A program made the translations under genes and the position numbers. Below, one piece after another: positions 1 to 16,212 of a stretch of DNA of 64,000 bases (position 1 is the stretch's first letter; the number at the start of each line of letters is the position of its first letter). Where the stretch lies: the NCBI GenBank assembly GCA_026936335.1, contig JAPMXV010000022.1, positions 1 to 64,000 on the forward strand, given 5' to 3'. Under the pieces are notes generated by a model, which was given only the letters and a program-made list of their open reading frames with translations, ran no database searches and was not told the DNA's origin. Source of the DNA: Mantamonas sphyraenae STR306 (Eukaryota > Protista > CRuMs).

Positions 1-167
1 CTAACCCTAACCCTAACCCTAACCCTAACCCTAACCCTAACCCTAACCCTAACCCTAACCCTAACCCTAACCCTAACCCTAACCCTAAACCTAACCCTAA
101 CCCTAACCCTAACCCTAACCCTAACCCTAACCCTAACCCCTAACCCTAACCCCTAACCCTAACCCTA
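1..167 (+). repeat. Telomeric repeat (CCCTAA)n, i.e. TTAGGG on the other strand; chromosome end
   Basis: Tandem CCCTAA from base 1. Variant units (CCTAAA, CCCCTAA, CCCTAG) occur toward the proximal end. Confidence 0.99.
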
Positions 168-9622: not shown

Positions 9623-9694
9623 GTGCTGGTAGCTCAGCGGTAGAGCGTTCGATTGCAGCTCGAATGGTCACGTGTTCGATTCACGTCCGGCACT
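9623..9694 (+). tRNA. tRNA-Cys (anticodon GCA)
   Basis: Cloverleaf: acceptor GTGCTGG/CCGGCAC, D arm GCTC/GAGC, anticodon stem TTCGA/TCGAA with loop TTGCAGC, T arm ACGTG-TTCGATT-CACGT. The discriminator is T. A downstream T-run (9698-9709) fits a Pol III terminator. Confidence 0.95.
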
Positions 9695-14339: not shown

Positions 14340-14615
14340 TCACTCCTCCGAAGGCCACATCACCTTGCTCACACAGTCCCGTGTGATTCCCACCAACGTC
14401 TGACACTGTGGATGCCCCGCCCCATGCTCCTGCACGCACGCCTGCGCCGCCTCAATCTGCGCCCTGCAAACCCGCTGAATCTCCGGCAAGACCTTGGCCT
14501 TCACACAGGCATGGTACGCCTTTTCCAACGCCTCGCAATTCGTCCCAACCATGTCCTGAAACTGGGCCCGGCACGCAATCACTTTCTTCTTCTCTTCCAC
14601 GCACTCCTCGCTCAT
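14340..14615 (-). CDS. Quadruple CX9C (double CHCH, CHCHD5/Mic14-like) small protein, copy 3
   Basis: Starts MSEEC. Four exact C-x9-C motifs: CVEEKKKVIAC, CEALEKAYHAC, CRAQIEAAQAC, CQTLVGITRDC. Confidence 0.85.
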   Translation of the reverse strand: MSEECVEEKKKVIACRAQFQDMVGTNCEALEKAYHACVKAKVLPEIQRVCRAQIEAAQACVQEHGAGHPQCQTLVGITRDCVSKVMWPSEE

Positions 14616-14669
14616 CTCTCTCGCAACAACCACACGCTGCGTGCCCCGGCGCGACCCCCTCCACCTTCT

Positions 14670-14930
14670 TTACCGCCACACACCCCCGCCTCCACCCAAC
14701 GCCTCTCCCACACACTGTTCCGTCCTCCGCAGCGCCTCGTCACACAGGCCCGATGCCTCCCCGTACCGTTCCAGACACTTGGCCAGCTGGCCCAACTCCG
14801 TATGGCACTCGCGCACAACCACCTTTTGTGCATGCGCCTTGACGCACTCTACATACACCTCTTCCTCGTCTGTGCAGCTCCCGTCCCGCTGGCATGCCAC
14901 CAGCGCGCTCTCTTGCCTGCGGCAGCTCAT
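14670..14930 (-). CDS. Quadruple CX9C (double CHCH, CHCHD5/Mic14-like) small protein, copy 2
   Basis: Starts MSC. Motifs: CRRQESALVAC, CTDEEEVYVEC, CHTELGQLAKC, CDEALRRTEQC. Its ATG overlaps the TGA of the upstream copy (ATGA). Confidence 0.82.
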   Translation of the reverse strand: MSCRRQESALVACQRDGSCTDEEEVYVECVKAHAQKVVVRECHTELGQLAKCLERYGEASGLCDEALRRTEQCVGEALGGGGGVWR

Positions 14931-15338
14931 GCTTCTTTCTCTCCCGAAACGCACGTGTGCAGCGCCTTGAGCACTTCCCCACACTGTTCTGCCGACTCCT
15001 TGTGTTCCACAAGACACTTTTCCACCCGCTTGATCTTCAGCAGGCACGCCTCTGCCCTCTCTTGCCGATACACCTCGCTTGCTTCCCGAAACGCCTTTCG
15101 CTCCACTCGGCACTCGCTGTACCACGTCGAACGATGAGCACGGATGCACCTTTGCAGCGCCGACTCACTTGGTGAAACTTTCTGGGACGAGATGGTGCCC
15201 ACGCAAACGACAAACCTGAATTTGGCTGCCCCGCGCGGCTCGCGCTCTCTCTTCGCTCCCTCTTCATTCCTCCTCCCGCTCTCGACTCGGACTCACGCCG
15301 CCTAGCAACGCCAACCTCGGCATGCGCAGGCTGGACAT
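14927..15338 (-). CDS. CX9C (CHCH) small protein, copy 1, with a degenerate first hairpin; probable 5' exon 15338-15297
   Basis: C-terminal twin motif CLLKIKRVEKC-x10-CGEVLKALHTC. The main exon has no in-frame ATG. A phase-0 intron GTGAGT(15296)...CCCAG(15182) joins MSSLRMPRLALLGG in frame. Confidence 0.7.
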
Positions 15339-15387
15339 CCTCGAAAGTCCACTTTCCCCGCACACGCGTCCTGGGTCTCCAAGCGTT
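15307..15387 (-). promoter_or_regulatory. SECIS element (type II) with a non-canonical AGGA core
   Basis: Minus-strand RNA: helix I AACGCU/GGCGUU; core A-GGAC...CGAG with tandem GA/GA; 11-bp helix II GCGUGUGCGGG/CCUGCGCAUGC; unpaired AAA; apical mini-stem UGGAC/GUCCA. It lies in the 3' UTR of a gene with an in-frame UGA. Confidence 0.8.
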
Positions 15388-15401
15388 CCACATCCCCCTC
15401 C

Positions 15402-16001
15402 TCAGACCTCCACCTCCACCTCCTCCCCCTCCTCCTTCCCCTCTCCCTCCTCCTCATCATACTCCCCATTATACTGCACTCTCAGCGCGTTGTTTGTCCA
15501 GTTCAGCAAGTTGATGAACCCCACCAACACCGTCAACTCCACGATCTCCTCGTCGCTGAACAACGCCTGCATCCCACGGAACATCTTGTTCCCCACACGC
15601 CCCAAACTGTCCTCGTACACAGCCTCTGCATACCGCAGCGCCGCGTCTTCCCGCTCCGTGTGCAGCTCGCTGGACTCCAGCGACTCGATCTCTTCGAGCG
15701 CGATTCCAAGCGACTGCATGATGGACCGGTGCGCCCCGGTTCAGAACTGACAATTGTTCAACTCGCTGATCCTCATAATCACCTTTTCCTTGATCCCGCG
15801 CTCCAGCAGCCCGCCCGGGTACACACCTTTGCCCGACGCAGCGAAAAACTCCAAGATCTCCGGCCGCAACGCAAACATCTGCAGCATCTCCACAGGCATC
15901 TTGCCTTTCTTCATCAGCTCCCGCGACTCATCAAACGCCCCGTGGTCTTCCACGCTGTCCAGCGTCTTCTTCAGCTGTTCTGCATCGATGGACACCCGCA
16001 T
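15402..16001 (-). CDS. AhpD/carboxymuconolactone-decarboxylase-family oxidoreductase, putative selenoprotein (CxxU; Sec codon at 15741-15743), 199 aa
   Basis: ORFs 15741-16109 and 15402-15719 are in the same frame. Reading through gives KEKVIMRISELNNCQF-U-TGAH, matching the AhpD motif E-x(6)-S-x-x-N-x-C-x-x-C-x-x-x-H. The C-terminal half (EDAALRYAEAV...FSDEEIVELTVLVGFINLLN...NAL) is also typical. A SECIS lies downstream. Confidence 0.88.
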
Positions 16002-16212
16002 GCCGCTCCTTTCTCGTGCCTCCCACCTCGCACTCCATGGCCAGCACACACACAAACTCCAAACTCCCCTCCTAATCCATCGACTGCACCCCCCCAGCAC
16101 CTTCTCCAACCACAGCTCAACTCACCTCCCACGCCGACCCAAACTTTTTCTTCTCCACCCACCCAAAACATTCTCCCCCCCCGTCTCCCAGCTCCCCCCC
16201 CCCGTTGTCTCC

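Follow-up and report, generated by a model that had tools for sequence, protein, structure and literature searches.

AhpD/CMD-like selenoproteins with a CxxU motif have been catalogued in prokaryotes, where TIGR01926-type, PF02627-type, NF041047 and NF041238 forms are described (PMC13188914, PMC2398784) and to which NF053654 can be added; the first-pass annotation of the DNA analyzed here had likewise named bacteria and metagenomes as the sources of the Sec-containing forms. The relay of PA0269 is composed of Glu36, Cys48, Tyr50, Cys51 and His55, and gamma-carboxymuconolactone decarboxylase proper has neither the CxxC motif nor the relay (PMC3141380). In eukaryotes, the algal selenoprotein AhpC_b was proposed to be a horizontal transfer from prokaryotes (PMC7539508), and the GGA/GA quartet found in the SECIS of Toxoplasma and Neospora SelT was called the one exception (PMC2647825). 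We found no eukaryotic AhpD selenoprotein in the open literature (subscription papers and theses were outside the scope), and AhpD is absent from the algal (42 families) and fungal selenoprotein surveys, which agrees with the earlier view that the family lies outside the known eukaryotic selenoproteins.

We analyzed a window of 64,000 nt (the whole stretch, positions 1 to 64,000 of contig JAPMXV010000022.1) from Mantamonas sphyraenae STR306, whose assembly comprises 25.06 Mb in 78 contigs with ~59% GC. We consider, with a probability of roughly nine in ten, that one of its nuclear genes is functional and encodes an AhpD-like selenoprotein of eukaryotic type. The features relevant to this reading are the following:

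1..165, strand not assigned: array of telomeric repeats with which the contig begins
15285..15395, minus strand: whole hairpin including the lower helix I (MFE -46.7 kcal/mol, z -2.47; other spans gave weaker z)
15316..15372, minus strand: type II SECIS-like element, from its geometry and a layout shared with other SECIS candidates of the genome
15402..16001, minus strand: CDS of the putative AhpD-like selenoprotein, 199 aa, intronless, the terminal codon (15404-15402) also being TGA
15405..15455, minus strand: Glu-rich acidic C-terminal tail past the family domain, encoded by low-complexity GA-rich DNA; the profile match ends at 15456
15729..15788, minus strand: AhpD helical hairpin with the relay E72, C84, F86, U87 and H91, spaced as in PA0269
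15741..15743, minus strand: in-frame TGA, codon 87, probably Sec (C84-x-x-U87), from the alignment of the Cys column and from DNA and RNA contigs that retain the TGA

The frame runs on the minus strand from 16001 to 15402 and comprises 200 codons including the stop: 86 aa, a TGA (15743-15741), 112 aa and the TGA stop. The first-pass annotation had joined two ORFs into one intronless frame, interrupted only by a TGA at the second Cys of the AhpD motif, and both translation and alignment agree with this, codon 87 falling on the second Cys of the N-x-C-Q-F-C motif. Family-like sequence was also said to continue past the TGA; a 105-row family profile indeed matched the frame over positions 1-182 of 183 (E 5.6e-63) with the single TGA inside. 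The CDS start is in register with bacterial homologues of 182 aa (blastp 1-182, up to 55% identity), and the identity to bacterial AhpD-like proteins is about 50-55% on both sides of the TGA. The telomeric array at the contig start places the gene on a nuclear chromosome. It is surrounded by eukaryotic genes (twin CX9C, SNARE, NOSIP, ankyrin/LRR) and is single-copy, with one match in the genome by family-profile search. Its codon usage is host-like (GC3 0.80-0.83; neighbours 0.61-0.82), and the gene has long been domesticated in the host genome. Directly 3' of it, at 14340-15202 (minus strand), short Cys-rich twin CX9C/CHCH-like frames are packed. Elsewhere in the window, ARAGORN called a tRNA-Cys(GCA) at 9623-9694 (plus strand), which overlaps long mechanical ORFs.

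For the homologue searches the two halves of the protein were used separately, while for the whole-protein alignment the TGA break was written as X. Searched apart, each half gave weak AhpD/CMD-type matches; the C-terminal half led to P0001, a bacterial protein of 182 aa that is 50% identical and through which a family comprising at least 1001 clusters became accessible. We observed that the break column is Cys in 120 of 120 homologous proteins and that the same codon is TGC or TGT in all 144 scored bacterial and metagenomic loci, which were found with patterns upstream of the codon (10 further loci were not parsed). Among the 120 matches listed for the N-half profile, the only fragments that appeared were of the Cys type. 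P0276 was considered as a post-TGA fragment and rejected, as it proved to be a Cys-type gene interrupted by an assembly gap. In the ESM Atlas, only bacterial clusters appeared. The Pfam model PF02627 (CMD) reached 20.6 bits against a gathering score of 23, the catalytic codon being scored as a stop, and it is present in most of the close Cys homologues. The curated cut-offs of NF053654, NF041238 and TIGR01926 (310, 175 and 81.8 bits) were missed both by the pieces of the window protein (13.7-35.5 bits) and by intact homologues (at most 72 bits). With scores so far below the cut-offs of the named bacterial seleno-AhpD models, the gene is not filed under any of these three.

The relay residues of PA0269 map to E72, C84, F86, U87 and H91 at identical spacing, and E72, C84 and H91 show a conservation of 90% or more across 105 homologues. 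Folding of the single sequence gave a pLDDT of 43 only. We consider the AlphaFold model of P0001 (105-row alignment, pLDDT 95) as a proxy for the 50%-identical window protein; it superposes on AhpD-like structures with TM values of 0.68-0.80, among them PA0269, Atu0492, Bmp8 and the AhpD proteins of Deinococcus and Streptococcus, and by this proxy the window protein is predicted to adopt the all-helical AhpD fold. The function of gamma-carboxymuconolactone decarboxylase proper was tried and ruled out, as a CxxC-type motif and the relay are both present. The intact relay (E72, C84, U87, H91) makes a selenol oxidoreductase likely. If the protein is a selenoprotein, it would quite probably work as a selenol peroxidase or disulfide reductase whose redox cycle alternates between U87 and C84. 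The following mechanism is drawn from M. tuberculosis AhpD and PA0269. Within the all-helical fold, the relay of E72, H91 and water would serve U87 as the presumed nucleophile. U87 would attack a hydroperoxide or a partner disulfide, and C84 would resolve the U87 intermediate, giving a selenenylsulfide that might be re-reduced by a thioredoxin or lipoamide system.

The same selenoprotein could also act on another substrate, as a reductive dehalogenase of the Bmp8 type in which Sec would work as in deiodinases. Bmp8 (6OHI/6OHJ) is a marine AhpD-fold debrominase and the hosts considered here are marine as well; it matches the family profile with E 4.5e-23, and the P0001 model superposes on it with TM 0.76-0.78, level with the peroxidase-type matches. 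However, the identity to Bmp8 is 18-20% compared to 30-32% for PA0269 and Atu0492, no halogen-metabolism context appeared in the bacterial neighbourhoods seen, and a bacterial form with TGA at the same column (L169, described below) lies downstream of a pyridine-nucleotide disulfide oxidoreductase gene, so that we regard a dehalogenase as unlikely, although it is the foremost alternative to the peroxidase or reductase role.

A selenoprotein gene of either activity has to be distinguished from a young transcribed pseudogene, in which a recent nonsense mutation turned TGC or TGT into TGA and the hairpin on its 3' side arose by chance. A single base change would be enough for this, the closest bacterial relatives are all of the Cys type, the core of the SECIS-like element is atypical, and the RNA contigs listed stop short of it. 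However, two independent lineages also have TGA in this column. Among the representatives at 50% identity, two proteins stop exactly before the Cys column. For the first of these, two marine contigs (L170, L171) show TGA at this column with an open frame beyond it, and 41 nt past the stop there is a type II hairpin of the canonical AUGA/AAA/GA form; SECIS_1 is the best full-model Rfam match of this element (22.6 bits, gathering score 35). A genomic copy (L176) contains a GT-AG intron of 59 nt that is missing from L170 and L171, plus the start of a second intron, and from the GT-AG intron we infer that the source organism is a eukaryote. Its protein is 42% identical to the window protein. The occurrence of this TGA, together with a canonical SECIS, in a second eukaryote points to a family rather than a one-off. 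The source of L170, L171 and L176 is an AT-rich (36-39% GC) marine eukaryote, and its AhpD-like protein carries an N-terminal extension of 41 aa, in which a hydrophobic segment might serve as a membrane anchor. In P0375, one gene caller read the TGA of this second eukaryote's gene as Trp. The second truncated protein is a bacterial gene (L169:10001-10528, GCA_040384045.1) that is split at the same-column TGA, and directly after this TGA a hairpin (z -3.7) resembles a bacterial SECIS. TGA at one Cys column in three lineages, accompanied in each by the SECIS type of its own domain, is not a pattern expected of pseudogenes. Homologues with Cys and homologues with TGA at the column (L169, L170 and L171), both of which the first-pass annotation had considered, were thus found.

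The sequence behind the TGA speaks against decay as well. Other lesions are absent, and the window protein keeps 29 of 31 conserved columns before the TGA and 24 of 29 after it. Post-TGA identity is slightly below the bacterial baseline (ratio 0.86 compared to 0.94 +/- 0.055), and the conservation after the TGA resembles that of the other Sec forms, so that the Sec reading withstands the possibility of relaxed selection raised earlier. Finally, the only SECIS-like match of the window lies directly behind the AhpD-like gene. We therefore regard a pseudogene as very improbable.

The candidate SECIS element of the AhpD-like gene consists of an unpaired A15372, the core GGAC (15371-15368), a helix II of 11 bp (15367-15357 / 15330-15320), a GAAA bulge (15356-15353), an apical mini-helix of 5 bp (15351-15347 / 15336-15332) and the 3' core CGAG (15319-15316). 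It thus has the GA/GA tandem, an 11-bp helix II, the unpaired AA and a type II apex, whereas its core is A-GGA (GGA/GA quartet) and not A-UGA (UGA/GA). Rfam SECIS_1 (RF00031) had no match in the 3' region and none genome-wide; since it misses all elements of this genome, Rfam appears blind to the SECIS of this lineage. Of the SECIS-like hairpin that the first-pass annotation had placed in the 3' region, the type II geometry is real, but the element has a GGA core and no Rfam SECIS_1 match: it is a GGA-type variant rather than a canonical AUGA-type. A SECIS descriptor found the element behind the AhpD-like gene as its sole match within 128 kb (both strands), compared to 0.1 matches per 128 kb in shuffles, a rate which is optimistic because the descriptor was defined with the element already in view. 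Loose DNA patterns applied to the whole genome were uninformative, and a narrower one gave mostly chance matches, yet recovered the deiodinase SECIS. In the SECIS candidates of the GPx, SelW-like, SPS2, TrxR and deiodinase genes, an AUGA core is combined with a GAAA bulge like that of the AhpD element; the SPS2 and deiodinase candidates can also adopt its 3' core. The MsrA candidate (L196:2228-2273, G000 C26), 35 nt past the TGA stop, has a G-GGA core, so that two GGA-core elements (AhpD, MsrA) stand against five AUGA elements in the genome. The SelW-like (L007) and SPS2 (L165) candidates have unusually long apical parts of ~40-50 nt, and the GPx candidate (L009:3078-3123) lies ~1170 nt past the stop codon.

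The genome also encodes the components for Sec insertion that the first-pass annotation had named: a tRNA-Sec with UCA anticodon, SepSecS, eEFSec, a Sec-containing SPS2 and SBP2, whose best PDB match is human SBP2 (E 7.8e-23); the PSTK-like match is weak (E 4e-12, below the cut-off). Six other genes, encoding GPx, a SelW-like protein, SPS2, TrxR, MsrA and a deiodinase, have TGA at the known Sec column, which gives a first look at a CRuMs selenoproteome. The match to the Sep15/SelM family (L193, G000 C13:42377-42592) is of the Cys type, an internal TGA being absent from the frame read, and SelO had no match in the genome. With this machinery, SBP2 would bind the GA/GA kink-turn of the SECIS-like element and eEFSec would deliver Sec-tRNA(UCA) at codon 87, giving a protein of 199 aa and about 22 kDa by its length. 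A SECIS needs a spacing of roughly 50 nt or more from the UGA; the element starts 370 nt past the UGA of codon 87 and 30 nt past the terminal stop, and the terminal UGA, 30 nt before the core, would remain a stop. UGA-reassigned or context-dependent codes exist in some protists, and in such a code UGA would be read as Cys or Trp, giving an ordinary CxxC protein or an inactive one. However, ordinary genes here end in TGA, as stated in the first-pass annotation and found for three neighbouring frames and a dihydrolipoamide dehydrogenase-like gene; the internal TGAs found are all at known Sec columns, and the UCA tRNA found is tRNA-Sec. A reassigned UGA thus has only a few chances in a hundred.

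Four sequencing runs of one study include the region. The Mantamonas sphyraenae study (PMC10492846, Table 4) lists one RNA run besides three of DNA, and we took one run as RNA from the spliced introns in neighbouring genes, the uneven depth and that Table 4. In two DNA runs, contigs of 9-10 kb extend across the gene into adjoining eukaryotic genes, and their CDS is identical to that of the assembly. In the RNA run, a contig (15474-15961) crosses the TGA without gap or change. The codon is therefore TGA, not TGC or TGT, in two DNA runs and the RNA run, no intron is removed across it, and the AhpD-like gene is transcribed with the UGA retained in the transcript. None of the RNA contigs listed lies on 15209-15473, so that the SECIS is not reached; since the GA-rich repeat was skipped and the records were filtered, this hole carries no weight against the element. 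An RNA contig of 87 nt at the 5' end of the gene (15932-15994) has 24 letters that do not align to the window in the listed pieces. The idea that a SECIS arm serves as first exon of the twin CX9C/CHCH-like frames was unsupported, the RNA contigs having no splice joint between them. Compared to the assembly, the short-read contigs show small indels at 16088, 16174 and 16194 and one substitution (16608), all outside the AhpD CDS. An assembly error, bacterial contamination or an intron removing the codon, to which the xenic culture and these indels might point, has a negligible probability, as the DNA contigs join an unchanged CDS to eukaryotic neighbours, the RNA contig runs through without a gap and the contig bears a telomere.

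Regarding its origin, the window protein falls within the bacterial 182-aa subfamily, on a long branch and without a supported sister. The other relatives with readable origin are bacterial (Acidobacteriota, Planctomycetota, Chloroflexota, Bipolaricaulota, Thioglobus), and P0057, the nearest on two trees, is bacterial and of the Cys type. In one quick tree, the two eukaryotic sequences and a bacterial Cys protein formed a group (SH-aLRT 93), and in AU tests neither the monophyly of the eukaryotes (p 0.30) nor a clade of all three Sec forms (p 0.09) was rejected; the eukaryotic sampling of the databases searched is thin. Since the family is bacterial and mostly of the Cys type, the gene probably came from bacteria and the 3' UTR SECIS was gained in eukaryotes; transfer from bacteria is a plausible and the simplest reading of the sequences. 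The first-pass annotation had proposed a possibly undescribed family, perhaps acquired from bacteria: the second eukaryote bears out a family, its bacterial origin is plausible and the place of the window protein inside the bacterial subfamily stands, while the trees are compatible with one or more than one origin. We tentatively propose, with slightly less than even confidence, an unreported eukaryotic family of AhpD-fold selenoproteins in at least two distant marine lineages, in which a bacterial Cys gene became a Sec gene through a new 3' UTR SECIS (here with a GGA core), possibly repeatedly. In eukaryotes the loss of Sec to Cys is usual because a SECIS is hard to gain, according to a 2026 review (PMC13188914), and the present gene, with near bacterial relatives that are almost without exception of the Cys type, offers a testable case of the opposite direction, from Cys to Sec.

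Compared to the prokaryotic AhpD/CMD-like CxxU proteins, the window protein has CxxU at the same second Cys of the AhpD hairpin and many Cys homologues, and as the CxxU AhpD chemistry is already known from bacteria the surprise is limited. In contrast to them, it belongs to a separate 182-aa subfamily far below the cut-offs of their models, and its gene is nuclear with a candidate SECIS in the 3' UTR, whereas their SECIS lies within the coding region after the UGA. With PA0269 (2O4D), Atu0492 (2GMY) and M. tuberculosis AhpD it shares the spacing of the Glu/Cys/Cys/His relay and, via the proxy, the fold; judged by sequence, it differs from them by a predicted Sec at the second Cys, Phe at the position of His132/Tyr50, a longer N-terminal part and the acidic tail. 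Sestrins, a eukaryotic example, and Bmp8 share an AhpD-like fold at an identity of only 13-20%, and to our knowledge neither is a selenoprotein. The algal AhpC_b is a precedent for a transferred selenoprotein, but its thioredoxin fold with UxxC has no relation to the all-helical fold of AhpD. Few selenoprotein families exist in eukaryotes, and most of them have the thioredoxin fold; if our reading is true, a member with the all-helical AhpD fold is added to them. The SECIS of Toxoplasma and Neospora SelT has the same GGA/GA quartet, with G for U at the first position and the GA/GA kept (PMC2647825), whereas here the GGA core occurs in a CRuMs protist and in candidate elements of two unrelated genes (AhpD with A-GGA, MsrA with G-GGA). 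Two GGA-core elements in one genome suggest that the Toxoplasma exception is wider and that gene finders which search for the SECIS first miss such genes.
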